From Epithemia pelagica (Eukaryota > Protista > Bacillariophyta): a stretch of DNA of 64,000 bases. This document shows, piece by piece, positions 7,331 to 64,000 of this stretch. Numbering within the stretch: the stretch's first letter is position 1; every line of letters begins with the position of its first letter. Location: assembly GCA_946965045.2 (NCBI GenBank), contig OX337231.1, positions 2,108,001-2,172,000 on the forward strand, read 5' to 3'. The notes under the pieces were generated by a model that saw nothing but the letters and a program-made list of their open reading frames with translations, was not told where the DNA came from and ran no database searches. Position numbers and translations under genes: made by a program.

Positions 7331-8644
7331 TCTGTCTGTTCTTTCAATGAAAAGTGCAAAAAGATATGATCAGATCTCTCGCGCAGTCGCATCCGCGTCC
7401 CTCCGTACACGTTTGGAGATTGACCCGCTCGCGACTCGCAGACGTGTTTGAAATTCCAAACGTACACTTATACTCGCAAGGGTAGCATAAGTAGCTAGCA
7501 TTTGACGAGGTTGCTTCAATGATGTGTCTTGTAGAAGAATTGATGGCCGCTCTGACCATCCAGTACTAGTCTACGTAGATATACGTATGTAGGGAAATGT
7601 ACCGGACAAGTATGTAGGGCATGGAATTTGGAATCTTGCTCATGAGGATTTCTGAAGAATAGGGAGACTATGGCTTAGTTGCGTGAAAACTACCCGTCTT
7701 CACAAAGGAGATTTCAAGTTTTTGAGTGAAGCAAAGCGCGTATCTAAATCGATGTTGGCTATAAAATCAACATGGCAAAGGTTGTGGATGCATTGGAAGG
7801 TCTTCTGTGGATCACGGCCCTTGCACCACTCTGGGTTCTGTACTTTCGAACCAAAATGTCTACAGTGGCTACTGTTCACCTTCTGGTGACCCAGTGGTGG
7901 AATCGTGGGATGGTCCTTATGTGTTTTTTGCATGAACAACTCTCTTAGTCTCTATAACACTAGGTAGAAGCATAGTATTCATCAATTTTGCCACCCACTT
8001 TGCCATTCAGTGGCGGCAATCGAAATTCTTTGAGTTCCGGGAGATCCTTGAACAAGACGGGAAACAAGAGTGTTTGTGGTAGCTGAAAGCATGAGAGGAG
8101 TAAACCTTCTCTGCCTACTCCCAGTGTCATGTATAGCTATAGTATAAGTCTTGTTCACGTATTGCTATTTCCGTTGCTTGGCAGTGGACAAATCTTGATC
8201 AATCAACATGGCTAGTTAACACCCAACTTGGAAGCATATAGTCGGGCTATCCGTAGAACAGTTTCAAATTGGACTGCACCATTGCATTATTGGATACTCA
8301 CTGCACCAACTCCATGGATGGTTGTTCTTGCACTGGTGCATGGGTGGTGCTGAAAAGGTATCATTGGGCTGGCCGGATGTCCCTTTTTCGCTTGCATCCT
8401 CGACTCCAACTCCATACATGATAAAAGCTCTGCTCCTCATCGTTTGTCCTCTTCTTTGTTGTACACACTGTAGTATTAATCCGAAGAGAGATCCCTATTA
8501 TTCATGGTCGTATCCACTTCTATTGCAAATTGCTACACTCAAGTAGGTACTCCTAGAGACTCTATGTATGATCTGTCGTAGCTACTCCTGACTACCATGA
8601 TTCCATTGCCGCATCTGGTCTGTACGTAGTCAACCTACCAGAAA

Positions 8645-8764
8645 TTCTGATGGCCATTCGGCCAACATAACTTTCAAGACGCTGATCATTGCCAATTACT
8701 ACAGAGCTACCCAGGTCGACTATTTCTAGTCATGGCAAAATTGTCGGTCAAATGGCCATCAGAA
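8645..8764. repeat. 120-bp fold-back element with a 14-bp perfect terminal inverted repeat
   Basis: TTCTGATGGCCATT (8645-8658) / AATGGCCATCAGAA (8751-8764), extending inward imperfectly to about 30 bp. Confidence 0.5.
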
Positions 8765-9346
8765 GGTGCGATTTTACCGCGACTTGGCTAACAAAACCGA
8801 GGTAATGATGGTTATATGAATGCCGGACGCTTTTTGTCTCGAAAACTTCATATTTCGAGTCGAGCTGGAGGACTTTGGAAATCCATAGACGAGACCCAAA
8901 CAAGTTCCTTCATTCTCCATGACCCTGATAGCTGGCACTGATAGCGAGGGTTTGTGTTTGTGCCGGCATCCGGCATGTAGGATAAAGGGAACAGATTGAT
9001 GAGGGTGATTTAAAGAAATTTAATCCGTTTCGGGAGAAGGGACACGACTCAAATCAGAACTGAACTGTGCGGTATTTATCCATTTTAGGACTTATTTAGA
9101 TTTCAACAGGGAGTAGTAGTACATGGGATGGTTCTCCGTCCGGTGAGAAGTCCCTTGGGAAGTCCCTTGGCAAGAGCAACGAAGAAGTCTGCCTTTGTAC
9201 CATCCCTCCATTCTTTCTTGTGAAGTGCATTGAAAGAGGACAGGAGAGACAAAATCAGAACACCCTGGATAGAAACAAGACTTTGATCATTGGTGCCTTT
9301 TCCAGGTCGTGATTGAAGAAAAGAGAGAGAGAGGTTTTATACTCAC

Positions 9347-10411
9347 TCATTCAATGTCCAGCTGCTCATCGTATAATTCCCACTTTTTTGTCGTATCTTC
9401 GTATTTCCAATTGACACACTCTTCAAATATCTCCTTGTTTCGCACATGAACTGTAACTTCCCAATTCTTGTTGTCAACTTGAATCCCTCCCTCTAAGCAT
9501 TGATAGTTTCGGGCTAAAGCTTCGTCCTTGAACTCAATTCCCAGTGTGACTGCATACCGGTTGTCATTGTCTGCTTGTCTGCGCGCTGAGGACGATTTGA
9601 AACTTAGTCGAAGCAAAGGGATTTTTTCATCGGTGTTGAGACCGTCCAACATTTGATGGAATGGCCAAGAAGCTGCGATCATGTTGTTTTCGTCGTTTTG
9701 GTACGCTTTGTTCTTTGCTTTGTCGTGAAGATGACATTTGTAGTGTTTCAAACCAAGTTGCCGGATGTCGACCGATTGATACATAACAAGAGGCGAGTTG
9801 TCCTCAACCGCCTCCGTGATTGGGACAGATACGCGATAAGATCTCAGCATGTTGAGATCACCACATGGAGACTCTGACGCGCTGGGGTCGTAGTCCAGCA
9901 GAGTGAACCGTTGAAAATCACGGGGCAAAACAACCTCTAGGGGCTCTTTTGGGGCAACGTTGACACCAGCAAGATTCACCAGCTCCTTGTGCATTTCCCA
10001 GGAGTTCAATTCGTTTTGAAAATCGCACGCCTTGTCGTAGTTTTTAAAATAGGCCTTGATTGTCAGATCGTTGTTCGAGTAAGTCACGCTTGCACCATGA
10101 CCCTCCGCTTCGGAGTAGCCTCCATGGTGACGCTCAAGCAACTTGTAAACGTTCCCTCTGGCACCCGCACAGGACAAGGCTCCAAAGACGGAGGCTCTGA
10201 CCTCGTATCCAACAGCCGCAACCTTCTTTTTAATGAACCTGTACCTGCCTTTAGGAATAACTTTATCCTGCGCAAAAACGACGGAATTGTCTTCTAAGTT
10301 TCGCAGATACCCAGGACCGTAGAATTGAATAATATCCGACAGCTTTTCGCCATGCTCGAAGTTCACGGCATCACCGTCTTCAAATTGAACACTGGCTTGA
10401 GTGTTTCCCAT
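9347..10411 (-). CDS. Crinkler (CRN)-like HNH endonuclease-domain protein
   Basis: KCHL..DENN..FHQMLDGLN (H-N-H/D) and C-terminal VHVRNKEIFEECVNWKYEDTTKKW, resembling stramenopile CRN HNH domains as I recall them. N-terminus MGNTQAS. Confidence 0.7.
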   Translation of the reverse strand: MGNTQASVQFEDGDAVNFEHGEKLSDIIQFYGPGYLRNLEDNSVVFAQDKVIPKGRYRFIKKKVAAVGYEVRASVFGALSCAGARGNVYKLLERHHGGYSEAEGHGASVTYSNNDLTIKAYFKNYDKACDFQNELNSWEMHKELVNLAGVNVAPKEPLEVVLPRDFQRFTLLDYDPSASESPCGDLNMLRSYRVSVPITEAVEDNSPLVMYQSVDIRQLGLKHYKCHLHDKAKNKAYQNDENNMIAASWPFHQMLDGLNTDEKIPLLRLSFKSSSARRQADNDNRYAVTLGIEFKDEALARNYQCLEGGIQVDNKNWEVTVHVRNKEIFEECVNWKYEDTTKKWELYDEQLDIE

Positions 10412-11602
10412 GCTGAACAGTATCGTTACTACTGCAGAGATTTCTATTCGAACAAGCTCGGTTATACTTGTACTCGCACGAGGTTGTCAACACCAAGAAG
10501 GAATCACAACGTTCGCGAAGTCGCGAAGTTGTTTCTCACCAGTCCGTCTGGCCGTCTCATAACGAGCGGTTCACCGCGAGACCGAAGAAGCCTGTCAATC
10601 TACAGTAGGACCTAGGCCCCTACATGAAATAATACGGCACACACGGATGCTAGTGCTCAATGCAACTGATTGCATCTTGTCCCTCTCCTGTCACAACAAC
10701 TTTAAGAATTCGCAATGTTTGTAGCCTTCGTGAATGGTGAAACCTGAAACCTCTCATCCATGTCAGTAAGCAGATGATGATTCTCGCAAAAATCTTATTC
10801 TTGTCCCCCAAGCATAACATAGATACAAAGTGGAAGACTAGAACACTAGAACGTTTCAGTGAGTTTCCAGTTTGATCTGTTTTTGTTCTCGTTGCTCTTC
10901 CTTCGTGGTCCTTGGGTCTTCTCTTTCCCCCAATCGAACCAGAATGAACATGAAGGTCCGAAAACTATCATGAACCGAGATAGATTACGAGTATTCACGC
11001 CCTACTCTATGTCTACTCCTTGGACCATCAAGTAAAGAGTAAAGATATAGAAAAAGACGTCTGCATTGATGTCCTCATTCATCATAAACTTTTATGCCCA
11101 CAACCAACGACGTACGACATGCTATATCTATATGAAGTTTCGTTGGAACACTTTCTTACTTCCGCATCATGATGAGACACGTAACGAAGAAGTTAGATGA
11201 ACGGCCACAGCGGAGAAACTAGGTACTCTAGGTAGGTAAGCTTGTCGCCATTTTATTTATCACTAGAGGCACTCCCAAGTTGTTTGCAAGAGTCTTGATA
11301 TCGATGAATCTAACCTCTCGAACCGTCTGTCGCTACTTTTAAGACAACATGATCGGGGCAAGATTTAGAATGTCGTCATGTTCCCCCATTCCCCAGATTG
11401 AACAACCTCAAGGCTGCATTGGAGCCGTCCGATGAACTTCGACACAAGCAAAAAGTTGAGACCTGCCACAAAATCTCCAGAGCAAAATTTCTTTTTGCCC
11501 TGCGATGAACACAAACGTGCTTTGCCACCGTAGCCACGAACCAGAACGACAAGAAATACCACCAAGAAGAGATCGAGACGATCCTATATCATCCCGCAAA
11601 AG

Positions 11603-12355
11603 ATGACTGTGCAAAATCATGAACTAGGTGAACTCGATATTCTGTGCAGCAAGGACAAGTCTCTTTCCACTCATCCTGGCAACCGTTTGTTTCGTGAACT
11701 AATCGAGGAAGCGAAGGCGCCCTATAAAAAGGCGATTGATAAGGCTACCAAGATGAAGATAACGAAAAACATTGTAGATCGGCTGCACAATGATTATGGG
11801 TGTCGATTTGTCAAGTTTGACACAGACTTGGCGTTCTGGGTGGAACTAAGTCGTATTGAATCAAGAGACAAGGTCGGCCATGCCCTACGCTTCGCCATCA
11901 AAGGAGCTCCGAAGAAGAGTCTTACACGACGACGACGATCTTCGGCCACAAAAATGGCCCACAGGAGTAAGTCAAGCGAGGATCAAAGAAGCAGCATCAC
12001 ACGCACTTCATGTTCCTCCACCATTGCTAGCATCCGTCCAAGCACCAAGGGAAATTCCAGTCTTCTCTCGTCTGGTCTAAGTATTGACAGAATCGAGACT
12101 GCACGAGGGAATCTCGATCTCATTTTCAAGCGACAGCAAGAGCTTCTTCTCGCGTTCAGCAACCACGTGGATGAGAGAACTACAGAAGAGCATTCAGCAT
12201 CTTGTCAAGAGGACCCTGGAATGAACCAATCAGAAAAGATGATGTCGCCGTCGTTGATGGAGCCTTTGGATCTAGATTCTGCTGAAGTTGCTGACATTCT
12301 TACAGCTGACGAGTTCAACTTTTTCGGTGGCTCTTCTGACCATGTTGAGCTGTAA
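11603..12355 (+). CDS. DUF6824-domain protein
   Basis: DILCSKDK..HPGNRLFRELI..KMKITKNIVDRL..RFVK..WVEL..RDKVGHALR matches the diatom DUF6824 pattern. Confidence 0.85.
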   Translation: MTVQNHELGELDILCSKDKSLSTHPGNRLFRELIEEAKAPYKKAIDKATKMKITKNIVDRLHNDYGCRFVKFDTDLAFWVELSRIESRDKVGHALRFAIKGAPKKSLTRRRRSSATKMAHRSKSSEDQRSSITRTSCSSTIASIRPSTKGNSSLLSSGLSIDRIETARGNLDLIFKRQQELLLAFSNHVDERTTEEHSASCQEDPGMNQSEKMMSPSLMEPLDLDSAEVADILTADEFNFFGGSSDHVEL

Positions 12356-13051
12356 GCCAGAGATTTTTGCTTCAACCTTCTGACTTGGGACCACATTGCT
12401 CCAGTTTCTTCTAAAGGCGGTTCGTGGAAACCGTTCTGTCCTTGGAGGATAGTATAATGTTGATAGCGATCCTTGAATCAATGCTTCACTTCTTGTGTAC
12501 ACGCGCTCCTGTTGTCGTGAATCCTGAAACTCGTCCAACGACCATAGCCAAACCATCCTCGAAAACTTTGCCATAAAGGAGTCAGCGTCTTATTTGGATT
12601 TCGTGAAACTCGGCCAGAGTCCTTCTTGGCGGCAAAAGACGCCGTGCGTCCTGTGTGTCGTTCTTGTCACAAGGACCACGCCCGGAAAGAGTCGAAATCC
12701 ATCATAGTTCATGGAGGGCCGTCTTTAGCGTCGACACTTGACATTGCCGCATTTCGACCGTGAGAAGATATATGTAATATGTCATGGTATCACCTATTAG
12801 ACCAAGCCATGCCTTGCTCTTTGTTTCATGCAAGAAAAGTCGCTTGTTCTTCGTTGTATGCAATCACAGTTCACTTTCACAGTTCACAGTCTTCTTCCGA
12901 ATCATCTGCACTCGGGTCGCTTATGGGTAGCTTTTGGTCGGTCGCCGATATCATGCTGGCTTCTTGCCGTCCATTTATTTTTCAGGTCTCCCACCAACAT
13001 CTATTTCGACAGACTTGACGACGACAACTATAGAGAAGAGGATGACAAAGA

Positions 13052-37253: not shown

Positions 37254-38650
37254 GGGCGAACCAAGGAATGCCTTGACACTATAAATAAGAATGTGGGTGG
37301 AAACATGGTGTGTGGCCCATAGCTTGTTAGTCTCAGGAAGCAGGACCACCCTGTAGGAAGAACAACCCGAACGAAGCCTTTCAAGACTCCTGTTTGTTCT
37401 GTTCTCCAGTTTGAAAGCACGAGAGGTCATCAAAGCAAGGAGAATAAAGGATGTGGCTACATCTACCTGGGATGGTGTGTGGGCGCCACATTCGCCCTAA
37501 AGCGGTTCGATCCCCATAGTTATCAATTAAACCTCTAGTTGATTTATCGAATTCCCGCTTAGAAGTACATCAGAATGACTTCCGGAGACCCTTTTAGGCT
37601 CCATCCACATTGCCACCCTAAGATTTACCGCACACACGCACACCACAATATATGGTAGTCTAGTCTATCTTATCCACGATATTGGGGCGAAGCCCCCAAC
37701 TGCACTCACCATGGCAAAGACTAAACGTTTCTGGAGATTCATTTCTTCGTCTGGGCTCTTGCAGTTGAGCACTAATAGGTAGATTGTTAGATCGATTTCC
37801 TGTATCTTTGTACTGCCACGTGAACATTCCAACTATTGCGGGACTACACCGTAAGAGACGAAAATTCAAACGGTTTCGTATCTCGAATCTCGAGTAGCGT
37901 GCTCCCGCTCTTGCAGTCGGATGATGTCCTCGTGATACATTGGATGTGGCAAGTTGTAGTGATTCCCTTTGCTTTGCTTTTCCGTTTCGAGGAAAGATAC
38001 TTTGTGGACTATGGAAAGCTATGCGGTGTAGAAAGTTGTTCGTCTGAGTTCAGTATGAACGGGACGGGTGGGCCGGAAGGCTTGGGGTCTGGGGTGGGAA
38101 TTTCCAGAAAGACCAGCTGTTCCGAAAACGGACGGACACTAGAGTAAAAAGTACAATTGAGCAAACATGGCGGTTGATGAAACGGTTAAATATATATGGC
38201 AATGATATAGCAATGAATATTTTAATGGTCAGTCATGGTATGATTTGGAGGTGCACCTCCAACCGCGTAAAATGTGAGTGGGGACTTACCCTTGACGAAT
38301 TTCTAGTAGTAATGTAAGACGCCCAACCGTTCTGGAATGACTGAAACAAGACTTTTTGTTTGAAAGCTCGTAGGAACAGGTAGCAAGACGTTAGAGAGAA
38401 TTGCTGTGTTCGATAACGGGCATGAATCGCTACAACGGCAGAGTTAAATTCATATTATCATCATACAGCAACAAGGAATTATAAATTGACTAGGAAAGCA
38501 TGTATTATGAATTTTGTTTTTCTTCGTTCGTTCTGCTGACCAGGATGCATGTGGTATTGATAATAACATATTGGTATACGATAAAAGCAGAAGCCCTTAT
38601 ATCTCTCGATTGGCACTCATATTGTATTTCAGTACACATATCACAATCGC

Positions 38651-38989
38651 TCAATTCTCAAAGGTCGTTTCTTCGGACTCCTTCTCGTCGACTTTGTTGT
38701 CTTGGAGCCTACCAGTCGGGTATTTCCAGCGATTCACTGCACTTCTGGAGTACATGCCGTATTCATCACGCGAAAAAGCCTGGTCTGCCACACCATCGTC
38801 TTCGCCACCAAGATAGGTGAACAGATCATTGTCATCACCGAGTTCGAAGTAGTTTTGAACAAGAGCATTGACTTCTTCATCTTGAAACAGATTATCCAAA
38901 GGGCGAGGAATATTGCCGGTGTGATCCAAGTCAGGAGTGTTGTAGCTGTAAGTGCAATTGTATCCGTGTTCTTTGTCATTCTTCTGCAT
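38651..38989 (-). other. Uncharacterised 112-aa ORF inside the Helitron
   Basis: Open frame with protein-like composition; no motif recognised. Confidence 0.35.
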
Positions 38990-39693
38990 GGGAGTATAAA
39001 TTTCCTCTATTACGGGATGTTTGGCCTTGGAAGCAGCACTCGACAGACCAATACTCTCACTGGTTTGCCTCTTGTGTATGGAAATCAGAGAAGTCCATCT
39101 TGTTGGCGGGCTCTCTACATGCTAAGATTCAAATGGATATAGGAGTAGAAATTTCCTCTATTAAGGGAACTTCCGCTTTCGAACTAGGACTCAACAGACC
39201 GATACTACTCTTACTTGTTTTCCCTCTTGTCTATGGTCTCAAAGTACTCTTTCTTGTTGGCGGGCTCTCTACATTCTAAGATTCAGATGCACATAGGAGT
39301 ATCACTTTCCCGCCAATGAAAGCAGGCTCCGCAGACGCACACGATCGTAACTACTCTCGTCGATGGATATGAGCATCTGTTTGCCTCTTGTGTATGGAAA
39401 TCAGAGAAGTCCATCTTGTTGGCTGGCTCTCTACATGCTAAGATTCAAATGGATATAGGAGTAGAAATTTCCTCTATTAAGGGAACTTCCGCTTTCGAAC
39501 TAGGACTCAACAGACCGATACTACTCTTACTTGTTTTGGCTCTTGTCTATGGTCTCAGAGTACTCTTTCTTGTTGGCGGGCTCTCTACATTCTAAGATTC
39601 AGATGCACATAGGAGTATCACTTTCCCGCCAATGAAAGCAGGCTCTGTAGACGCACACGATCGTAACTACTCTCGTCGATGGATATGAGCATC
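38990..39693. repeat. ~152-bp minisatellite with a 316-bp higher-order duplication
   Basis: TTTGCCTCTTGTGTATGG at 39064 and 39380; subunit CTTGTTGGC.GGCTCTCTACAT.CTAAGATTCA occurs four times. Confidence 0.9.
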
Positions 39694-39963
39694 TTGCACT
39701 CTGGTAATGAGCCCAATCACGCCCTTCCCCAGAATTTACCATGGCTCGCACAATGAGGGCAAAGGGAGAAGGAATAAAATTTCGACGGCTTCTGGACAAG
39801 AAAATACTCCATTGGTCACCTTTTTGTCGGGATGATCTCGTTTGTAAGCACGAGGATGATCACAATGAGGAAAGTGCACCGTGCACATGTCTGGTTTGTT
39901 TCCCTTGGCCAACTCGGAGAAACGAAATTTGTTGTGTCAGTTCTGCTTTGGAATGGATCAATC
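39625..39963 (-). pseudogene. Captured fragment of the RBR gene (matches 6421-6771)
   Basis: Co-linear match from CCCGCCAAT to GGAATGGATCAATC with substitutions and indels. Confidence 0.9.
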
Positions 39964-39981
39964 ATCGGTCGAGTTTTGTGC

Positions 39982-40263
39982 AGCAAAAAGGCCTTGAACA
40001 TGATGGTGATGATAATAGTGGGATCTTCGAAGATAAAGATTTATGGCAAGAGAGGCGGTTCGACGTTTGACAACAACTTTGACACCGCCGGTGCAGGAAA
40101 AGCGTGAACAAGGACAGACAAGGATCTTGTGTGATGGCTGTTGGCTGTTGGACTTTGCACACAAACACGAGAGACGTCAATAGCTCAGTCAGAGGTTGGT
40201 TGACTTCTGTTCGACCAAGAGATCGAGAGAGCGACTGCACAGCAACACAGAGATACCAATCGT
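39982..40263 (-). pseudogene. Captured LHC promoter/5'UTR and first codons (matches 63512-63813)
   Basis: AGCAAAAAGGCCTTGAACATGATG..AGATACCAATCGT; encodes MFKAFLL as in the LHC gene. Confidence 0.9.
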
Positions 40264-41171
40264 TGGAAATCAGAGCACTCCATCTTGTTGGAGGAATTGT
40301 GAACGAAACGAGGGCCCATCAACCGACAACAACAATGATTATGCTCCTCCTCCCACGAGCAATCCAGATGACGTCCACGACAATTTCATGCAACGACTGG
40401 ATGATTCGGCCGCCTTGTATGCGGCATCACATCCAGAACCACATCCAGATGTGGGTGGTTGGTTATACACCGCAACAGGTTGGAGAAAACTGCTGGTCAG
40501 CACTATGGAATAGTATCATTAGGGTTAAGGTTTCAATTGGTGCACGCAGGTAGTGCCTCTATGTTAGGCACAATAGAGCTCCTAATAGCAAGAACTAGGT
40601 AGGAGTACGATTTTAGTGCACTTTGGATCTTAATATTACAAAAAAACCCAGCGTGTAGTGCACCTTGGGTGAGATAGTGGTTCGGGTCTTAAATCCACAC
40701 TTGATCGAACAGATCAGGGGTTCGATTCCCCCCACTTCAGCACAAAGTTAAGATTCGCCATGTTTGGGGTTCATGGCCATAGACGTATCCCCGCTGGTAG
40801 AGTGGAAGTCCTTGCTGTGAGCTCTGCTGATGTTTGATTCCACTGGGCCGGCCGGTGACACGGTTTTGTCTTTTTGATTCATACTCTACCCTACTTTTCT
40901 CTTCTATTTAGCAAGTGCCCAATCACGTAGCCAACGATCACACCCAACACCCAACGACGACCAACATCATGGGCGCGCAAAAAGTGCTCCCATGGCGAAC
41001 GTTCGTTGCATTTCTTTTGTTCGTGTAAGGAGGCGCTTCTCTTTATCGTAAATTTGGTGAGCACGACAGAGGCGGAACTTTAGTTCGGAAGTATCCACTC
41101 CTACCGAACAACCGTGAAGGAACGGCCGTGAAGCATTCTACGATTCATGAGTTTGTACGGAATCCAACCGC

Positions 41172-42110
41172 ATGGACGCATTTTGGCTCATTTGGATTGG
41201 CATTTTGGTACAAGCCTATCCTAACGCCAACGAGGAGGACGAGTAGTAGCACCAGCCCAATTCACCAAGACGACAACACGAGAAGGATACGAAACGAGTG
41301 GCAAAGCAGAATCCGTCCAAGAAATTTCTTCGTCAATCTTTCACAGGAACCACAACCAGTCGTTTGGAACTACTCTTGAAAGAAACTAGAACAAAACAAG
41401 CAAGTTTGGATGCACCTCCCAAGCAACGAATGGACTTGGACCAGAAACTGATGGCTTGAGATGAATTGGACTTTGATTAAATGGATGGCAATGAGGATGA
41501 ATCCGTCTTTGGTCGTCCGTCGTCACGAGGCACACTGGTTCAACAACGATTACCACAGTGGTTGCCTCGTCCCAAGGATGCTCGCAATCGTCCACAGTCT
41601 TGCCATTATCAACATCAACAGTATTGTCGGTGGGGCAACGCAAAAACGGAGTAGGGTTCCTCTGATACGAAAGAGGAAAGCTCCCCTCGACCCGGCAGCC
41701 GGGGCCATTGCAAACCAACCGCCACCACGAATATTGGCTGTAATCACACGACAATACCCACTCCACCATGATCCTCCAAGCCAAAACCAACACCGCCCCA
41801 ATTCACCAAGACGACAACACGAGAAAGACACGAAACGAGTGGCCAAGCAGAAATTGTCCAAGAAATGTCTTCCTTGGTTTGGCACCACTCTTTAAAAAAA
41901 CCAGAGTCTTGTCATTGTCAATATCATCAGTATTGTCGGTGGGGCAACGCAAAAACGGAGTAGGGAATTCCTCTGGTACGTAAGAGGAAAGCTCCTCTCG
42001 ATCCAGGAGCCGAGGCCATCGCAAACTAACCGCCACCACAAACCCCGCCAAACAGACTGTGGATGCTATTCGCTAGTAGTCACACGACAATACCCACTCC
42101 GCCATGATCC
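41172..42110 (+). pseudogene. Degenerate, partly duplicated gene fragment with a signal-peptide-like start
   Basis: One frame reads MDAFWLIWIGILVQAYPNANEEDE**HQ.. with six in-frame stops; 41601-41727 is repeated at 41912-42038 and 41256-41330 at 41797-41870. Confidence 0.5.
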
Positions 42111-42325
42111 GTTACTAGCTTTAAATCATGGATGAGACAAGAACGTATGGTTCTCGTTTGGTTCATCGATTCCACAACACTAGCAACTATACTAAGACTG
42201 CGCGTCCATGCGTCTGCCATTATAACATGAGTCCAAACCGTATGTGTGCTTGCGCTAGACAATCAATAGACTATTAGTTTTACTCTCTTGGTATTACAAA
42301 TAACCAAGATACTTACATATCTCGT

Positions 42326-43168
42326 TCATAACATATATTCCACATCATCCTCCTCGTCTTGCTCGTCGCTCCCTTCGTCGCTCTCTTCATTAACCTTGTA
42401 TTCATGTTCCTCTTCTTCTGAATCATCATTCTCATCTGAATCATCATTCTCATCTGAATCACCATTCCAATTGCCATAACAGCCATCCTCTTCATCTTGT
42501 CCGTCTGAATCGTCTTCCTCAGTGTCATCCTCTTCCTCTTGCCAGTCGTCGCCTCCATCGCTTTCCTCTTGATTGACCTCCAACTCACTGAATTCCTCAT
42601 CTTCCTCTTCTTCTGAGTCGTCGTTCTCATAGGAATCGCTTTCCTCTTGATTGACCTCCAACTCACTGAATTCCTCATGTTCCTCTTCTTCTGAGTCGTC
42701 GTTCTCATAAGAATTCTCATCGTCTTCCCAGTCGTCACCATTGTCACTCTCTTGTTTGCAATTTTCAGTTGACGAAGAAAGCACATAATTCTCAGGAAGA
42801 TCAGGTTTGCTAAATTCGTGACGTTCCTCCACCAAACTTAATTTAACAACCCCGTCAATGAGATCATCATCGTTGTCATAGACGTAAGCCTTCATAGCAA
42901 TACGTTTCCCATTTTCCTGACAAAGTCGAATATCACAGAGTCGTGATCGAAGCCTTTCTGCGATACATCGCAACACATCAATTGCCTTCGAATACTTTTG
43001 GATGACACACAGACGGATGTAAAAATCATGCTCACTGAAATAAACGATACAATCAACAGGTTTAAACGCACAGCCTGCCTCGATGATAGTCCGTACCGGA
43101 TAACCAGGCATGCCTGGATGAGGGAAAAACCCGGCACGATAACGGAGACCTACACGACGACGGGGCAT
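42326..43168 (-). CDS. Uncharacterised Helitron-internal ORF with a long acidic repeat tail, divergent from RepHel
   Basis: 280-aa ORF; SYENDDSEEEE(H/D)EEFSELEVNQEES occurs twice. Confidence 0.55.
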   Translation of the reverse strand: MPRRRVGLRYRAGFFPHPGMPGYPVRTIIEAGCAFKPVDCIVYFSEHDFYIRLCVIQKYSKAIDVLRCIAERLRSRLCDIRLCQENGKRIAMKAYVYDNDDDLIDGVVKLSLVEERHEFSKPDLPENYVLSSSTENCKQESDNGDDWEDDENSYENDDSEEEEHEEFSELEVNQEESDSYENDDSEEEEDEEFSELEVNQEESDGGDDWQEEEDDTEEDDSDGQDEEDGCYGNWNGDSDENDDSDENDDSEEEEHEYKVNEESDEGSDEQDEEDDVEYML

Positions 43169-43390
43169 TATGCTTTCTTCGCAAAGGTTTCGACAAAACT
43201 ATAACAGAAGTCGAACAAACACAGCAACTTCCTACATCATTTCGTTCTTTTCTGCAGCACATTCAAATTAACCTAATGCTATGGTGGTGGTGCCACAAAG
43301 TTCAGATTCCATGCAATCGAATGAATTGAGCGCAAATGATAAGTAAGGAAATATTGCGATCATTCAAAAGTGATCCAATGAAACTAATTC

Positions 43391-43643
43391 CTTGGAATCT
43401 CGGATCAACAGTTTGGTCGCAGAACAATTTCACAGCCTAATACACAAACCACATGTCACAGAGAGTATGCATAGCTCCGTTAGCACAGAACCCATATGCA
43501 GGTCAGTTGGTAGACATTCCTCTGAATCTCGTATCGCCAGTTAGGTCGCAGAAAATTTTGGAGCTTGTTAATATACGAACCACATGTTCCAAAGAGTATG
43601 CATAGCTGCCTTAGCACAGAAACCACATGTAGTTGTCAGTTGG
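43391..43643. repeat. Two diverged ~130-bp tandem repeats upstream of RepHel
   Basis: GAATCTCG..GGTCGCAGAA..ACCACATGT..GAGTATGCATAGCT..TTAGCACAGAA..GTCAGTTGGT occurs twice. Confidence 0.8.
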
Positions 43644-43769
43644 TTCGTGACAGTTAGGTAGAAGACCTATCTACTGACTGTGTCACTTACCTTTGACTTC
43701 TCTTCTCACAATACTCATTTGGCCTAAGTTGTCACCAGTTGTAACCAGCAAGATCTGCATTACCAAGAA

Positions 43770-46700
43770 ATGTTAGCTAGAGACACCTCGATCCAAAAAG
43801 GAATAGCCAGAGCAGTGGCAAGTCGGGATTCTCTATTGACTAAGAAAGGAGACTTGTTTTTCCCAAAAGTATGTTGTGTCTGTGATCAATTCATCAAGGT
43901 TGGGTCAGAGAAATGCTTGAAGATTGATGATATTCTTCATGAGAAAATAAAACCAAAATTCATGAAGTCTAATCTTGACTTTTCACACTATGGTACCGGA
44001 CTAGAGAGCCAGAAACAGATCAAGAAACATTACACACAAACGTGTTACGATTCCTCTCATTCCAACAGAGAGTATCGTCCGCTGCAAAGCTTGGTTCTTT
44101 CACCGTCCTCTTATGCAATCAAAAAGGGACAATCTGAAGGATTTGGATGTTGCTCAGAATGTTACCATTGCATCATTTACATGAAAAAAGGAATAGTGAA
44201 CCTGATAAAATTCCCAAAAATGCTATCATCAATGGCTATATGATTGGTCCTACACCTCTTTGCTTGCAAACTCTGAATGAGGTCGAACTCGCACTCATTT
44301 CGCCGGCGAGGACAAACAAACACGTTTTTTCATTCACGGCAGGATCACATAAATCAATTAAGGGTTGGCACTCCTTGTATTACAATGACCTCAAAGCTGT
44401 CAATGGGGTTATAAATTGGTGTCTGTCAGCAACAGGACAAGCTGACAGTGCACTTCCTAATCATGGCGAACAACAAAGTGAAGATACTGGCCAAAACATT
44501 GCTGCTCGATGGACAGAACTTTTTGATCACGACATGGATGATAGTGATGATGACAATGTCAGTGATGTTGTAAATGACATTCAAGACAATAATAGTGGCA
44601 TCAGCGACAATATGAATGAAAATGATGACACAGATCAACCGCCACTTAATAGCAATGAATCGCCTCTTCTGCCTCAAATTGCTGTTGTTTTAACAGGTCC
44701 TTTCACACCTACACAGAAAGCTTTGACTCGTCAGCGCACAAACGTTCGATGGAATTTGGTCAAAAAAGCGCTACAATGGTTGAAACAACACAATCATTTG
44801 TACCATGACTTTGATTTGCCACCAGAACATCTTGTAAAACCAATTGTCATTGACAAAAGTGATGACGCACCTGCCTCAACGTCCAATGTTGAGCAAGTTT
44901 TTGAAATCACGGCGGTCTTTCCTGATTCTGATGAACCTCAGCAGAAAAATGGAGGGTTCTCCTCCCAGGATGATTTGAAGCAAATGACGCTTGATCGTCT
45001 TTTGGCAGACCATGACAATAAAGATGCAACATCGATTTCATGACCTTCGAAAACCTTGTTGAAAGACTATCAAGGTTCTAATCTCCTGAAGGCATTTCCT
45101 TTACAGTTTCCTTATGGGATTGGTGCCTATGATAAAGATGGAAATCCCCATGTCGGAATGAGTTACTTTGGGCATCTGATGCGACACTCAAGCAAGTTTT
45201 TTCACCATGCTGATTTTGTATGTGTCGTACACAATATGTTTGAGCTTCAAAGAATGGTCTCAAATTCATATTTGCGAACCAGTGATACACAAGCAGAATC
45301 ATTTGCTACAATCACTGACGAACAGATTCAAGATGCCATCAAGCGCCATCTTGAAAATGCCCAGGGATCAGGTCCTAGTGACCAGTTTTTGAGAAAGATG
45401 AAAGCTGTCGCATCTTCTATGGGACACACTGCAGGAGCTGCCAGAAAAGCACGACAAAATATGCTAGCAATGATTGCAAAATTTGGTTTGCCAAGTGTGA
45501 TGTTTACAATTACACCAGAAGATGCCGTAAATTTCAGACTGCGTGTAATGGTGAACAAAAAGGTTGGTGAAGCAATTCCACCTAACCCAGCTACAACTTC
45601 AACTTTGGATCAACAAGAATTCATCCTTGACTGTGCTCGCATTAGACAGATTCACCCGGGAATGTGTGGTATTGACTTTGAAAATGTGATTGCAATAACG
45701 ATTGAGCATCTCCTTGGCTGGGATATGAAAAAGAGAATGAACAAAATTGATGAAGGTTTATTTGGTGATTTGCTTGCGTGGTGTGATGCAGTTGAGGAGC
45801 AAAGAAGAAAAACACTTCATGATCATTTTCTCTTATGGTTGTTAAAGTGGTCAAAGTTATTGAAAGGACTTGCCAATCAGGCAACAAGAGAACACTTTTC
45901 GAAGCTCTTAGTTGACTATGCATCAAAGGTCATGAGCACACATATGCATGGCGAGACTATTCCGCCTTGTGTAAATGATGCTTGTGTCTCACGTGCCTTC
46001 CACCCATGTTCCAAACAAGACATTCGGAATTTGCGAACAAAGATTTGTGTAACATCCCTTGGTGGGAAATCAATTGTCAGATGCGCAAACTGCAACACAG
46101 CAATGACAAGTGAAGCTCTTGTTCTTTCCAGATTGAAAAACATTCTCCCAGCCATGGCTTTTCAAGAACAACAACCACAGAATGACCCAATGGCACAAGC
46201 TTCATCCTTCAATGTTCCACTCACAAATTCAATGGAATTGTTCCTGATGCGTCAGCAGATCTTACATCCCAAGAGAATGACAACTGATGGCACCTTTGTT
46301 CTGACAGTATTACGCAATTTGCATCGCTCAAAACATGCTATTTCTTGTTTCAAGAAAGGAGACGAGTGTCGTATGCATATTCCGTGTGCAGAGTGTGAAA
46401 AAACAGAGTTGAAGTTTTCAGAAAATTCAACAAAGTGGTTTGATTGGAAAGGCAATGATCAATCCAGACACTTGTTCACACTGGAAGCAAATCAAAAACA
46501 CCATGATGCATTTGTCAATATTCACAATTGTCATGCAAGCCAGTTTTTTGGTTGCAATACTAATGTTGTGACAGCTGTTGACGGAGGAAGTGTCATGTAT
46601 ATGACATGTTACATTTCTAAGAATACTCAAGAAGAAGACAGTTCACTGTTTACAAATGCAGCTAAACAAATGATACGAAAAATGCGGGAAAGATTGCTTG

Positions 46701-49579
46701 AACTTGAGCAGACTACCAATTCGACAGAAATTGAGACAGTTGAGCAAGACCGTGAAACTTCTGGAATGAGGGCATTAATTGGGGCAATGTTGCTGTCCAC
46801 TTCTGCACATATATGCAGTGCACCGATGGCTTCTTACTTGGTGCAAAATAATGGCTCAAGGTTTCGTTATTCACATGATTTTGCTTATGTGAATCTCAAA
46901 AATTTTGAAAAAGCAACCTTGCAAGATTTGTCCCTTGATTCGATTGATGGAAACACCTTTCTGACGTCAGATGTTGCAAATTACTTGTTCCGCCCAGAAG
47001 AACTTGAAGATGTTTGTTTGTATGATTTTCTGTCCAACTTCACAGTGACCAGGAAAACATCAAAAAGCTTGGAATGGATCAAGGAACACCCTTCAAAAGA
47101 CCATCTTGGTGTAACAGCCGCAAAACATACAAAGATACCACTTGTGACTTACAAAGATTTTGTTGACACCAAATATTTTGGGAATCGAAACATTGAAACA
47201 GAAGAAATGCCGGATGATATCTTGCACGAGGAACATCATTACATGGAACTTTATGGAAAAAAAGCAAACATCTTGTTCCATTCATTCAGATCCTTTCCAG
47301 GAGATTTGACAAAGGATGGTTCATTTGTTAAATGTTTCCAAGCAGCACTTCGGAGTGGAATGATCACAGCTGAGCATCGGCAAATTCTTGCTAACATTCA
47401 AGATTGTCGGAACAGTCTAAATTCTGGAAGACCAGTGGATCCTCTGGAAAAAGAAACACAAAAGCCAACTGACAACTGTTGTGTCCATGATGAATATGAT
47501 AATGAAAATGATGAGGATAGTGCTCTTCACAAAGATTTTGACAGTGCCTTTGAGGAGCTTATTGAGACGGTCAATGACATGAATGAGACAGGACTTGACT
47601 TGAGGTCGCCAACCAACATTTATCAGATTCCATCATGTATCATTTGCAAATGTGGAACGTCAAACTGTGGCATTCAAAACATTGTTACACCTGTTATAGA
47701 TGAAGACAACGGCTTTACAGGAAATGCTCTACAGCTCCTGGAAGACACCTCAGCTTCAAATGTGGGTCTTGAGTCCACCCCTGAAACGTCCTTTTCTCAT
47801 CATGTAACCAAAGCAGCTCTTCATGAATTGGCAATTTCACGGACAGAGAGAATTACAGCTGGTGATGGACAGCAAGATATCAAAGCGATTGGGACATTGA
47901 AAAATATACGCGAATATGCAGCCCACCACTTCAGAGACGATATGGATCAGCGCTATGCATTCGAAGCAATCATTTCTGCTTTTATATTGCGTTTGTATGA
48001 TGAGGCAAACCGAAATTCAAATACAAATCCTGAAGCAATGCCTACACGGAAACGACGGAAACTTGACAACATTCAAAAGACATTGCAAAAAGTCAACAGG
48101 GGAAACCAATTCATTGCATTTCTATCAGGAGCAGGGGGGTCTGGGAAAAGCCACGTTATCAAAACAATTGTACAATACGCCAAAAATTTGTGCTACAACC
48201 TCCACATCAGGTATGACAAGAGAACTATTGTCGTTACTGCTCTTACAGGTGCTGCAGCAGTTGGGATAAACGGAGAAACAACTGCTATGGCTTGTGCACT
48301 AAACAGAGCAATTACCGAGGAACCAGAGCAATGGAAAAATGCTTATCTGTTGATCGTTGATGAAATTTCATTTGCCTCAAAAGAAGTCGTTGATACTCTT
48401 GATCACAAATTGCGACAAATATTGCAGCCGGATGCAGCCTTTGGTGGAATTGCTCTTGTCTTTGCAGGTGATTTCACACAACTGAAACCAGTCAAAGCCC
48501 AACCATTATTCCTTTTTAAGGACTTCGTGAAATGGTATGACTGGGTACACACATTCCTTGAACTTAAGACAAATCACAGGTTTCGCCTTGATCCACCATG
48601 GGGGACAATTCTTGAGACATTTCGAGATGAGGGACCAAGCAATGGTGATGTGGCGACAATCAATACTCGTGTTGTTGGATCTAAACATGGACCAACAGAG
48701 AAAGACATTCCTCCAAATGTGGTTTATGCAACAAAAACTAATCTTGATCGAGCAGCAATCAATGATGCCATTTTTGCTAAACATCTGGAAAATACCCATT
48801 CAAAAGATCCTAATGTTGACCCTCCCATGCACACAATCTGTATCAAAGCGTCCAACTTGAAGTGGAAAAAAGCGGGAACAAGAAATGACTATGTTGATTT
48901 CAACAAGGCAAGTGAAGATATCCTATATGCCACCTGTGGTGAGGGTCACTTGCAAGGACGAGACAACAAGAGATATGATCCACTTTTGAAACTGTATTAT
49001 GGAAGACCATTGTGTATCAATGAAAACAAAGACGTTGAGTCATGTATTGCTAATGGAGCCATGTGTGAATTCAATGGCGTTCTCCTTAAGCAAGGGGTGA
49101 CATTAACTGATTTGGAGAAAATATTGATTGATGGATATTATGTTTGGAGTCTTAAGGTCACTCAAATTGAGGGAATCAAGGTGAAAATTGTTGATGGAAA
49201 TTAGAACCATGTTGTTCTTTTGAAGCCTCAGACTGTTACTCAACAAGTGCAGTTCCCACTCCCCATGTTTGGCATGAAACGAGTGAGGAAAACGATGAAA
49301 ATGACGCAGCTTCCTCTCAATGTGTCCAATGCAAGGACTGTTCATAAGCTACAAGGGAGATCAATCGAATTTCTTTACATATTGAACTGGGACTACACGG
49401 GCAATTGGAACTATGTTTGTTTGTCGAGAGTTTGCCAGCTCAAAGGCCTTTTCCTTGCAAAACCACTTATAGCCGACAAATGTCGTGGAATGTCTGATGA
49501 ATGTAAAGAGTTTCATGTACATTTCCGGACAACTAAACGTCCGCCACCCGCGGTTCAGCTCGATGAAAGACATAATTAA
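43770..49579 (+). pseudogene. Helitron RepHel (DUF6570-like N-terminus, HUH Rep, PIF1 helicase), disrupted
   Basis: CCVCDQ..CSEC..PKNAIING..LNEVELALIS; AFPLQFPYG; FGLPSVMFTITP; EEQRRKTLHDHFLLW; YMTCYISK; GAGGSGKS; IVDEIS; AGDFTQLKPV; TVHKLQG; YVCLSRV. Frameshift near 44184, in-frame TGA at 45041 and TAG at 49202. Confidence 0.95.
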
Positions 49580-49943
49580 CTTTCATTTCTAGGAAGTGCT
49601 GCCAATGATAAATAGAATAGTCCTGTCCACTGTACTACTGATACTGAACTCAGCCGTCCTTTACCGCCTTGGCGGTTTCAATTGGAAGCATTAACCGCGA
49701 CTGACCGCTCCTTCCGCCCTCATTTGACCCACAGATATGTTAGAAACATTGGCGACAAGACCTGAAACTCCAGAGACATCTAAGAAAGAAGCAACCGACA
49801 ACGACAGCAGAACCAGAATAAGCCATCCCGCAGTCACGTGATTGCAACACGACAGCGACGGTGAAGGCGTAATCGCTCTACTGTCGAGCGTAACTCTTTT
49901 TCTCTTCTTCCCTCCTGGCTTGGACTACCCAGCATACATCATC

Positions 49944-52090
49944 ATGTCACCTGTCAACATCAAGCGCGAGGTGGACAACGAAGACAAGACAATGGAGCAA
50001 GGCAACGAGGCGGTCTCATCATTGTCGTCTTCAACTTTGTCTTGTCGTCGTCGATCGTCGGAACCCAACCTTGCCGGTACTAATAGAACAAGCAGCACCG
50101 CACCAGACAAGGACAACAAGGCAGCAGGAAAAAGTGGGACCACGGGATGGGATGTCATGTATCGCATCTTGAAGGCGTACTTTGACAAACACGGTCATAC
50201 TCAAGTGCAACAAGGTCCCAATGGGCAGCACAAATTATTGGAAACATGGGTCAAGCAACAACGGCATCAATGGAACGAGTGGATGGGTAGTGGAGGTACG
50301 ATAGACCTTGGTTGGTTGCGGCCGATCGCATGGACAAATTAGATGCGATTGGCTTCTACTCCGAGTCCCTGCCCTTGGATATCGACAACCACCAAGAGAA
50401 TGGCCTCACAAAACCATGTTCTCCATCGTCGGTTGACCATCCCCCAAACGACATCGGACAAACGTTCTTGTCTGTACCATCGACTAGAACTGATGCTTCC
50501 TCGCTTCCAGCTCAAGGGAAAAGTAGTCATACCCATGTCCCCGCAACTGCGACTGTCTCTCCACCACAACAATGGGGTTCAAAGCTAGATCAAGCTGTCA
50601 AGCAAGAAGATGATGACGACAATGACGATGTCGTGTTCCTTTTCACCAACAAAGTCCCGTCTCACGTTTCTAGTCCACTGAAAACTCATGCGCCCTCTTC
50701 CAGTTTGGCATCAACGATGGTTCCGTCCCACTACTCACCGCTGCAACATGGTCAAGATACAACCAGCTCATCACCAAAGAGCCCACGACTTTGCTTCGAA
50801 CCAAAGCCTGCCATGGCAGACCAGCTGGATATGGTTCGAACGTAAAAACTTCTTCAAACCGCGCCACTTCAAGCTCCTCGCAAGGTCACGTCTCCCGTCA
50901 CTACGACCGAAGCGTCTTCTTTTTCTTCTGGCTTTTCGGAATCAACTCTTTCCACCAACCCCACACAACGACGTTCTTCTATTCGTGGCAACAGTAGTAC
51001 GGATGATGAACAACAGAAACAAATGAAACTTTCCATCAAGTTTAAAGACTGGCTCCTGTCGCGTTCGCCCAACGAAAAAGACGCGGACCATCCATGTATC
51101 ATCCGTCGAGGTCAAAACTTGAAACACACCCGTCAAGGCAAACCCAAATGCGCAGAGAAGCAGGATGATCTGGAGCAAATCATGACCAAACAAGAATTCT
51201 TTAGTAACGAACAGATTCTGTTCAGTGGTGGCCAAGATAGCGTGAGAAACAAATGGATTACAGCGGGCTACAGTGTTGGAAATCGTTACTATTACTATGC
51301 AGCCGGGGGAAAACAAGGAGTTTACCATGTCAACAGTGACCTTTGGTGGTATCCGTCGCGGCAGCTTGCCAAGGAAGCTCTTTGGTATGTACTGGCGAGC
51401 TGGACGGCTGAGGATGACGGTCTTTTGGAATTGCTCAAACAAAATCATGGCAAACGAAGTGCTGATCATCTGCCAGATCCCTCCACAGAACGTCCTAGCA
51501 AACGGAGGGCCTCCATGAGTCCGTCGGTCCAATCCATAACACAAAGTGAGGAACCCACCACAGTGGTCGCAGAAGGACCACCCGTATTTCCGCTCAATAT
51601 AAAACCAGACTGGATTCTTTGGACCCATACTTCACGACGACTCCGAGACGAGGACACGACGAAACCGTCTTCCAGTGGCACGAATGAATCAAAACCGCGT
51701 TGTTTCCAAAAGTGCCGTCGATTTGAAACAACAGGTGAATGCCCCTATGGATTTAAATGTATCCATGCGCACGTGCACAAACATGGGAGATTTGGTGTCC
51801 CCGAACATGTTACCAAGGCCTTGGACCGTTCGGAAATTCAAGTATGGTGTCACCAGACCGAGAATCTTTCCAGCGACAAGTCTTCATCGTCGCCACGTCC
51901 AACTCATTGCTATACGAGTGGCTACGTAGATGGCAATGGCTATTTCTTTGTGTGGGGTGTGGGACAGGACCGACAGGGGACGGGCATGAAATGTCCTCAA
52001 ACGGGGCTGTGGTGGTACAAAACCAAGGAAAAGGCCATTGGGGCTTTGATTCGAAACCTACGGTCGTCGGGACGACGGCAGCAATCGTAA
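49944..52090 (+). pseudogene. HA-CCCH-WWY family copy B
   Basis: Short frameshifting deletion near 50312 relative to copies C and D; TAA at 50843-50845 where copy C has AAA. Confidence 0.85.
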
Positions 52091-62729: not shown

Positions 62730-63531
62730 TTAGAAGAGGGGCTTGAAAAAGTAGGGAGTTTCGGCCACGACGGGAGATCGGTAGAGGGCTTCTTGGACGA
62801 CAAAGCCCAAAATGGCCATCATGGCCAAACGACCATGTTTGATTTCCTTGGTCCTCATGGCCATTTGACCAGCCGAATCTCGAGGGAAAAAGCCAAGGGG
62901 ATCAAAGCCACAATCACCGGCCGTGTAATCCTTACCCTTGCTTTCTCGGACCTTGTCATTTTCAATTTCGACAATGCCAGCCAAGAGAATGACCAAGACC
63001 CAGTACAAGGTGTCAACCTTGCCCAATCCACCATTCAACAAGGAAGGACTGGCACCGGTCTTGGTCAACAAGGTGGACATGCCCATGGCATCGGCCAAGG
63101 GCTTGTCAAACAATTCGGCCAAGGGCCAGCCCACAACAGCCAACATGGCCAAACGAGAATGTTTCAATTCCGCCTCGCGCATGTACATGAGACTGGCCTT
63201 GTCGGCACCCGCAAAGTTAAAGGGACTTTGGTGATGAAACAAGAAACAATGCCTCGCATTAGAAGGGAGACAACACAACAGAAATGTCGGTATGTGCGAT
63301 CCAGACAACTTACTCAAAGCCAACATCTCCGGCCATGGTACCATCCAACAACTTTGGTCTGGGCAAAAAGGGAAGGGAGGGAGACATGGATTTTTGCGAG
63401 GACGAGCCTTGTTCGTCTTCGTCAAAGAGAGCATAGCGTTGGACCGCGCTCGATGTAGAAGTCGATCGGCTGGAAGGGACAAAGGCTGTCACAGAGACCG
63501 TCGAGAGGAGAAGCAAAAAGGCCTTGAACAT
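62730..63531 (-). CDS. LHC: Light-harvesting fucoxanthin-chlorophyll protein (intron 63226..63313)
   Basis: Signal peptide + AFVP cleavage motif; splice restores GDVGFDP; REAELKHSRLAMLA and KEIKHGRLAMMA helices. Confidence 0.97.
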
Positions 63532-64000
63532 GATGATGGTGATGATGATATTAAGGATGGTTGTGTATGATAAAGATTTATGGCAACAGAGCGGGGGTTA
63601 GACGTTTGACAACAACTTTCACACCGCCAGCGCAGGAAAAGCGTGAGAGGAATGGAAATACAAGTATCTTGTGTGATGGCTGTTGGACCTTGCACACGAG
63701 CACGAGACACGTCGATAGCTCAGTCAGTCGTTGGTTGACTTCTGGGTTGACGGCGGCGTCGATCAAGAGAGATCGAGAAAGCGACTGCACATCAACACCG
63801 AGATACCAATCGTCGAACTTTTCTGATCTCATTGTTGTGTTGGAATGATGCGCTGTATGCGACTGACTCATCTTGCGACTGACTCACGCGCGCGCAAGCA
63901 CAGGCGGTCAGAGGGGCAACGGACAGACGCGTCGTGACGTATTAGACCCGAAGAACGATCCATCGGGTTTGCCACTCTGTTGTCATCGCATATCGCATAT

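Follow-up and report, generated by a model that had tools for sequence, protein, structure and literature searches.

The question raised by this stretch of Epithemia pelagica DNA (GenBank assembly GCA_946965045.2, contig OX337231.1, positions 2,108,001 to 2,172,000 of the forward strand; all 64,000 nt of it are called the window below) is what has been inserted near position 38,040, where exactly the insertion ends, and whether it belongs to a family that still moves. An initial annotation, made from the letters of the window with no database searches, had proposed a complete Helitron2-type element at 38041–49678. With a probability of about 0.9, we consider 38040–49682 to be a copy of a Helitron2-type (HLE2, endonuclease-less) rolling-circle transposon, inserted recently and without target duplication. 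As read from its sequence, it is a real and well-delimited copy of such a family, one recently active, with a defective coding region.

Limits of the element and the empty allele

Related copies were located by a protein word search, which led to a 98%-identical relative and a nine-member cluster in one ENA assembly; the contigs were then compared. An uninterrupted allele was found in assembled contigs of three public runs from the same organism (X3, X4, and X5; two samples, one study). The features first needed are these:

38040–49682, plus strand: whole element, 11,643 nt, 5′-TCGTCTGAG...GGCGGTTTCAAT-3′; the block shared by eight copies, with an empty allele in runs X3, X4, and X5
38037–38039, plus strand: 5′ flank TGT, reflecting a target preference; TRT precedes 10 of 11 copies in three families

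All eight copies terminate in ...GGCGGTTTCAAT, and on the left side the block they share reads ...TT CGTCTGAG.... Because all eight are identical through CAAT to 49682, CAAT is assigned to the element; the 3′ end at 49678 proposed by the initial annotation falls 4 nt short. In the public-run contigs the 5′ flank continues to 38040 and is followed by GGAAGCATTAACCGCG..., which is the window from 49684 onward. The join can be written as GAAAGTTGTT followed by GGAAGC, or as GAAAGTTGTT followed by GGAAGCATTAACC, in place of the predicted GAAAGTTGTT followed by CAATTGGAAGC. It follows from this uninterrupted allele that the inserted DNA is 11,643 nt long, and not 11,638 nt. The record from X5 has 1,283 nt, of which 802 are 5′ flank and 481 run into the 3′ flank; over the 802 positions, the empty contigs differ from the window at 0–2. 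Written as GTTGT^TGG, the empty allele shows no target-site duplication, as had been proposed. The insertion is polymorphic, filled in the window and empty in the public-run contigs. An empty haplotig was also sought via the protein of the upstream flanking gene, where the only match was the window's own contig; the assembly represents one haplotype at the insertion locus.

With a T at both junctions, the limits can also be spelled 38041–49683 or 38039–49681. A T followed by CGTC...TTCAAT (38040–49682), lying between T and T, is the only reading that fits both the shared block and the empty allele. Shifting it by one T gives TT-CGTC...TTCAA between G and T, and the empty sites and circle junctions are the same either way; the 5′ junctions of the FoHeli elements show the same one-T ambiguity (PMC5148889). 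Another delimitation, TGTT...CAAT (38037–49682), whose removal leaves a gap-free match to the upstream paralogous region, was ruled out by the empty allele.

Terminal structures

38041–38056, plus strand: 5′ asymmetric terminal inverted repeat (ATIR) CGTCTGAGTTCAGTAT, 1 nt from the 5′ end
49641–49656, plus strand: 3′ ATIR ATACTGAACTCAGCCG, its last base 26 nt from the 3′ end
38041–38066, plus strand: 5′ hairpin, with outer stem 38041–38045/38062–38066 and inner stem GTTCA/TGAAC at 38048–38052/38056–38060
49663–49676, plus strand: 3′ sub-terminal GC hairpin ACCGCC-TT-GGCGGT, 6 nt past the 3′ ATIR
49677–49682, plus strand: 3′ tail TTCAAT, part of the element and identical in all eight copies
38041–38371, plus strand: left terminal region, 76% identical to family 2 over 333 nt; its first 60 nt are 82.5% identical to family 3 (both families are described below)

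The two ATIRs are 16 nt long and complementary at 15 positions, as the initial annotation had reported, and their 13-nt core is found at just these two sites in the window (0.10 expected by chance). The 5′ hairpin that it described (GTTCA-GTA-TGAAC) folds as well, with a modest energy (−6.3 kcal/mol, z −2.2), and gains an outer stem, CGTC/GACG; the stem involves the 5′ ATIR. The 3′ GC hairpin is also as described. The number of terminal Ts is invariant among the eight copies. An Rfam search of 37500–50200 gave no match.

Word depth in the public runs is about 112 in the flank, about 710 in the inner 5′ half of the element, and about 6,400–12,400 over its first 200 nt; relative to the flank, this is ~50–110-fold for 38041–38240 and ~6-fold over the remainder of the 5′ half, which suggests that there are many further elements sharing the left end only. 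A 184-nt contig from a biofilm metagenome (X1) matches 38044–38227 without a mismatch.

Copies in the assembly and sister families

The family has eight copies, the window locus (L002) and seven more that are 98–99% identical and were found either on other contigs or at another place on that of the window (seven different contigs in all). Their flanks are unrelated, and they diverge by 0–1.2% over the 3.3 kb common to all. Five are long (11.6–13.3 kb; L001, L004, and L005 have 12,570–12,597 nt), with indels in the 5′ half setting them apart; the other three, of 6.0, 5.8, and 5.8 kb, have internal deletions that take away much of the Rep-helicase. Two of these deleted copies, L007 and L008, have 5,805 nt each with 0 mismatches between them, on different contigs, with flanks that are ~25% identical, the level expected by chance. 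Since they are identical at different sites, movement is very recent, and what moved was a non-autonomous derivative. The L005 copy lies ~480 nt upstream of a chlorophyll a/c-binding protein gene (L005 1527–2718).

The same pair of ends recurs beyond the family, in three elements belonging to two sister families. Failure of the pair to recur, or termini of the CTRR type, had been named in the initial annotation as what would count against it; what was found is the same pair in all eight copies and in both sister families. Family 2 is represented by one element (L011), with 65% protein identity over the Rep half, ~71% identity at the DNA level, and a broken Rep-helicase. Family 3 is represented by L009 and L010, with 50% protein identity and intact genes of 1,886 and 1,901 aa. 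The layout is shared: TT, then CG(T/A)CT(G/A)AGTTCAG, the 3′ partner, a hairpin, and a short tail, which in family 2 is CCAAT. In the family 2 ATIR pair, G>A on the 5′ side is offset by C>T on the 3′ side; family 3 has T>A in its outer 5′ stem, offset by A>T (CGAC/GTCG, compared with CGTC/GACG). Bao and Jurka based their argument for the importance of the structures on compensatory patterns of this sort (PMC3627910). The 3′ hairpins of the three families are at the same place, with stems ACCGCC/GGCGGT, ACCGC/GCGGT, and CCC/GGG; the last of these, in family 3, is very short and was not recovered by an energy fold.

Some further observations concern the sister loci. The family 2 element is apparently 18.1 kb long (L011 5659–23804), with ~8.6 kb between the end of the broken Rep-helicase and the right end, unlike families 1 (that of the window copy) and 3, where the gene ends ~100–450 nt before the end of the element. 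A DDE_Tnp_4 transposase fragment and a gene for a 1,061-aa reverse transcriptase are found near the sister copies in L009 and L010 (L009 594–1163 and L010 22015–25200).

Target site

Over the 11 copies of the three families, with each element taken to start at its T, the preceding base (−1) is T in all 11, position −2 is G in eight and A in three, and position −3 is T in 10. In the window family, the base following the insertion (+1) is T in five and C in three of the eight copies. The target rule is TRT^Y, here ...GTTGT^TGG, and not the T-run of the initial annotation. It is close to the target TTTT^T/C of the Chlamydomonas Helitron2 (PMC3627910).

The Rep-helicase gene

43770–49579, plus strand: Rep-helicase gene, ~1,936 codons, intronless and broken; colinear with homologues of 1,880–1,950 aa
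44184–44189, plus strand: A6 run, shifting the reading frame by −1; L001, L004, and L005 have A7 and are in frame
45041–45043, plus strand: in-frame TGA, private to the window copy
45815–45838, plus strand: HUH motif of the Rep domain, LHDHFLLW, conserved in comparison with 13 homologues
46598–46621, plus strand: two-tyrosine catalytic motif, YMTCYISK, conserved in the same comparison
48128–48151, plus strand: Walker A motif of the PIF1-type helicase, GAGGSGKS, conserved in the same comparison
49202–49204, plus strand: in-frame TAG, private to the window copy; the conserved C-terminal helicase motifs (49205–49576) lie beyond it and are lost

Pfam recognizes DUF6570 (1.4e-20), Helitron_like_N (3e-16), and PIF1 (PIF1/AAA_30; 9e-21) in the Rep-helicase. 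None of the four gene pieces matches an endonuclease domain (Exo_endo_phos), in accordance with the initial annotation, nor is Exo_endo_phos among the domains precomputed for the 65 listed homologues. The gene ends 103 nt before the 3′ end of the element. In a protein word search, the closest named relatives come from the diatoms Nitzschia inconspicua and Seminavis robusta, in keeping with the mention of diatoms in the initial annotation.

The element was called complete in the initial annotation, and as to its ends it is; the autonomy which this implied fails at one frameshift and two in-frame stops, with which the window copy cannot make the enzyme. Lesions of several copies cluster near 45041–45070 and 49187–49252, and introns were considered as an explanation for the stops; they were rejected, as a single tblastn segment carries the alignment of homologues across both regions. 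A programmed −1 frameshift at the A-run is also disfavored, since the zero frame there reads G_AAA_AAA, with no canonical slippery heptamer, and other copies have A7. The A6 run is treated as a probable homopolymer deletion. It occurs in the window copy and in L003, a pattern that departs from the overall similarity of the copies, L003 being closest to L005.

None of the five long copies has an intact Rep-helicase. The four besides the window copy carry at least two lesions each, private or shared, and the protein cluster at 90% identity contains nothing but fragments of the eight copies.

Classification and alternative readings

Every structural property of Helitron2/HLE2 elements that was examined is present: a Rep-helicase, ATIRs, both hairpins, insertion between T and T/C without target-site duplication, and a T at the start of the element. 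By definition, Helitron2 ATIRs are 8–16 nt long and lie 0–2 nt (5′) and ~20–30 nt (3′) from the ends (PMC3627910), ranges that include the 1 and 26 nt found here. DUF6570, which HELIANO reports as HLE2-specific (PMC11417382), points the same way, and the HLE2 assignment of the initial annotation stands on all of these counts. The C-terminal AP-endonuclease (Exo_endo_phos) that marks Helentrons in the narrow sense is absent, as are the 5′-TC...CTRR-3′ ends and A/T insertion of canonical HLE1 elements: the 3′ end is TTCAAT in eight of eight copies, with flanks of T and T/C. The uninterrupted Rep-helicase frame of an autonomous element is also absent.

Several points weigh against the Helitron2 reading or limit it. 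The placement in HLE2 relies on structure, with DUF6570 standing as a proxy for a transposase tree. With a single T at each junction, either cleavage position would fit the sequence. The empty form comes from contigs of one study, possibly of the source strain, and the insertion may be heterozygous or strain-specific. There is no intact Rep-helicase among the family copies found, and it is the identical copies and the polymorphism that speak for activity.

The narrower delimitation at 38041–49678, with an end in the Ts after the hairpin, a T-run as target, and the upstream paralogue as the empty site, is extremely improbable and is refuted by the eight copies and the empty allele. Ts do follow the hairpin, and the paralogue is uninterrupted at the homologous place: the element splits copy B (37.5–38.04 kb and 49.68–50.6 kb) of two tandem paralogous regions, of which copy A (~34.3–35.5 kb) is whole. 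However, the two are only 84% identical over ungapped columns, with 254 gap columns out of 1,325 and indels exactly at the site; the paralogue demonstrates an insertion, as the initial annotation had recognized, and would not by itself fix the ends. CAAT past 49678 is common to all eight copies, the actual empty allele lacks CAATT, and in place of a T-run the site is flanked by TGT and T/C. A related question is whether the empty form might be a precise excision product, and not the ancestral allele. Sequence alone cannot separate these, as both yield GTTGTTGG, but characterized Helitron transposition is copy-and-paste, with the donor staying in place (PMC5148889), and the few differences in the flank of the empty contigs are as for alleles; we regard excision as improbable.

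As to class, a canonical Helitron (HLE1/Helitron1) with unusual ends would account for the 3′ sub-terminal hairpin, for the lack of a target-site duplication, and for a start in TC if the element is written from 38040. It has against it a 3′ end in CAAT instead of CTRR, a target of T^Y instead of A^T, the ATIRs, 5′ hairpin, and DUF6570, and a match to Helraiser that is confined to the helicase core (E 1.6e-7), with none in Rep; it is scarcely credible. The element might also belong to the Helentron lineage, the HLE2 subgroup normally carrying an AP-endonuclease, and have lost that domain, instead of being a Helitron2 in the narrow sense. The ends of both variants are alike, and HELIANO finds Helitron2 to be non-monophyletic within HLE2 (PMC11417382). 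Against this, no endonuclease domain is seen in any gene piece or in the 65 listed homologues, the gene stops shortly before the end of the element, and the ATIR distances fit Helitron2 but not the mite Helentron, where they are 2–4 and 38–60 nt (PMC3627910, PMC4067079). Domain loss from a Helentron therefore seems unlikely, and we keep the Helitron2 assignment.

The 5′ half of the element

38651–38989, minus strand: open reading frame (ORF) of 112 aa; no Pfam family; a 39%-identical counterpart in the family 2 element L011
38987–39695, plus strand: internal tandem repeats, with a 154-nt unit and a 316-nt unit present twice at 98% identity
39625–39963, plus strand: captured host fragment A, 87.5% identical to window 6421–6771, within a 332-aa minus-strand ORF
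39982–40263, plus strand: captured host fragment B, 79% identical to window 63512–63813, just upstream of a chlorophyll a/c-binding protein gene
42326–43168, minus strand: accessory ORF of 280 aa; a conserved N-terminal region of ~135 aa, then an acidic repetitive tail

The ~5.7 kb of the 5′ half hold the left terminal region, the ORFs, tandem repeats (including a further one of 131 nt), and the two host fragments; this half is not needed for coding. The initial annotation had counted roughly half of the element as cargo. As a proportion this is right, whereas the part that can be traced to captured host DNA comes to ~620 nt, and at least two ORFs of the 5′ half look like family-borne accessory genes.

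Both fragments are present in all five long copies. The chlorophyll a/c-binding protein gene beside the source of fragment B is at window 62730–63482 on the minus strand. The sources lie 31 kb upstream and 14 kb downstream of the window copy, in the same order and orientation as the fragments in the element, where these are just 18 nt apart. No other copies of either source were seen in ~260 kb of other loci. The cargo differs from its sources by 12.5% and 21%, far above the ~1% between element copies.

The N-terminal 135 aa of the 280-aa ORF are 58–59% identical to a family 3 ORF that lies in the opposite orientation. The 280-aa ORF has no Pfam match, and a word search found just a copy in the same genome. 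The predicted structure of its N-terminal domain has a mean pLDDT of 41.6, unusable for a fold search; an atlas feature search gave a weak lead (0.85) to a Rad60 SUMO-like (SUMO/ubiquitin-like) cluster. Among ten further ORFs of the cargo and flanks, Pfam recognized none apart from the chlorophyll-binding protein gene beside the fragment B source.

Genomic setting

The G+C content of the element is 0.43, compared with 0.48 elsewhere in the window. Of the two tandem paralogous genes, the second has its start codon ~270 nt downstream of the insertion. The flanks form a tandem array of diverged paralogues (34.3–37.3 kb, 49.7–52.1 kb, ~54.2 kb, and ~57.9 kb), and pieces of copy B match two more downstream places at 87–90%. 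The first gene of copy A contains a helicase-associated (HA) domain; that of copy B consists of two overlapping ORFs, 49842–50342 and 50312–50845, and is not called in the public annotation.

How the family may move

From the observed ends, copies, empty allele, domains, motifs, coding defects, and capture, we infer the cleavage chemistry, a circle, and the source of the enzyme, by analogy with the Helitron steps summarized in PMC5148889 and PMC11417382. The Rep-helicase would nick the top strand at the 5′ T, beside the 5′ ATIR and hairpin, and unwind that strand 5′ to 3′. The right end would be recognized via ATIR pairing, the GC hairpin, and the TTCAAT tail, with cleavage after TTCAAT. The ends would then be joined into a single-stranded circle, with an expected joint of ...GGTTTCAAT-TCGTCTGAG..., and the circle would be pasted at a TRT^Y site.

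Since no family copy in the assembly is intact, the family would have to be driven in trans. Candidates for the source of the enzyme are an intact sister family, in which the 5′ context is common and the 3′ hairpin and tail are different, or an unsampled haplotype. A more speculative and rather doubtful extension has the family moving now without a working enzyme of its own, driven by the family 3 Rep-helicase (1,886–1,901 aa, 50% identical, with the same 5′ cleavage context and ATIR core) or by a copy on the other haplotype. It further supposes that the cargo was acquired by capture of a whole chromosomal stretch, bounded by a left end and a right end far from it and afterwards shortened by deletions, instead of by the usual bypass of the 3′ end; this idea arises because the fragments keep the order and orientation of their nearest relatives, 57 kb apart around the window copy.

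Relation to known elements

Helitron2 (PMC3627910) is similar in its short ATIRs, of which the 5′ copy is terminal and the 3′ copy lies 20–30 nt from the end, upstream of a hairpin; in a 5′ hairpin that includes the ATIR, a T at the 5′ end, insertion ahead of T or C with no target-site duplication, and the absence of an endonuclease domain; and in compensatory changes that preserve pairing between related families. It differs in its target (TTTT^T/C there, TRT^Y here) and in the 3′ tail, here TTCAAT. In the element described here no Fanzor/TnpB cargo was seen, nor were one-ended copies with target-site duplications, and the host is a diatom-like alga.

Apart from the one-T ambiguity, FoHeli1 and FoHeli2 of Fusarium oxysporum (Chellapan et al. 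2016, PMC5148889) share HLE2-type ends with hairpins at both termini, a short target before the insertion (TNAT there, TRT here), and recent activity inferred from identical copies. Their 3′ ATIR and hairpin are 30–40 nt from the end (26 nt here), their end sequences are TCAG.../...ATTTT, and the circular junction of FoHeli1 was shown by PCR, whereas the junction proposed here is predicted from the sequence.

Helentrons and the non-autonomous HINE/DINE-1 elements derived from them (Thomas et al. 2014, PMC4067079) likewise have sub-terminal inverted repeats, a 3′ stem-loop, T^T insertion, internal tandem repeats, and deletion derivatives that outnumber their coding partners; the counterpart of these derivatives here is the high word depth of the first ~200 nt. 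The present element differs from Helentrons in lacking the AP-endonuclease, in having ATIRs closer to both ends, and in the constant number of terminal Ts in its eight copies. Helraiser (Helitron1; PDB 7LCC) shares a two-tyrosine HUH Rep fused to a Pif1-type helicase, the lack of a target-site duplication, and capture of gene fragments; it has 5′-TC...CTRR-3′ ends and an A^T target, and is without ATIRs or a 5′ hairpin.

In the searchable literature, diatom papers give Helitrons only as lines in repeat tables, and diatoms are not mentioned in the main text of the HELIANO and Heringer & Kuhn papers. As a member of a known transposon class the element is ordinary, and it leaves the known Helitron mechanism unchanged. 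For an HLE2 family of a diatom-like alga, it supplies nucleotide-exact ends, the TRT^Y rule, a naturally occurring polymorphism between filled and empty sites, and two identical non-autonomous copies. These are of use in transposon annotation of diatom genomes, and a transposition assay could start from them.

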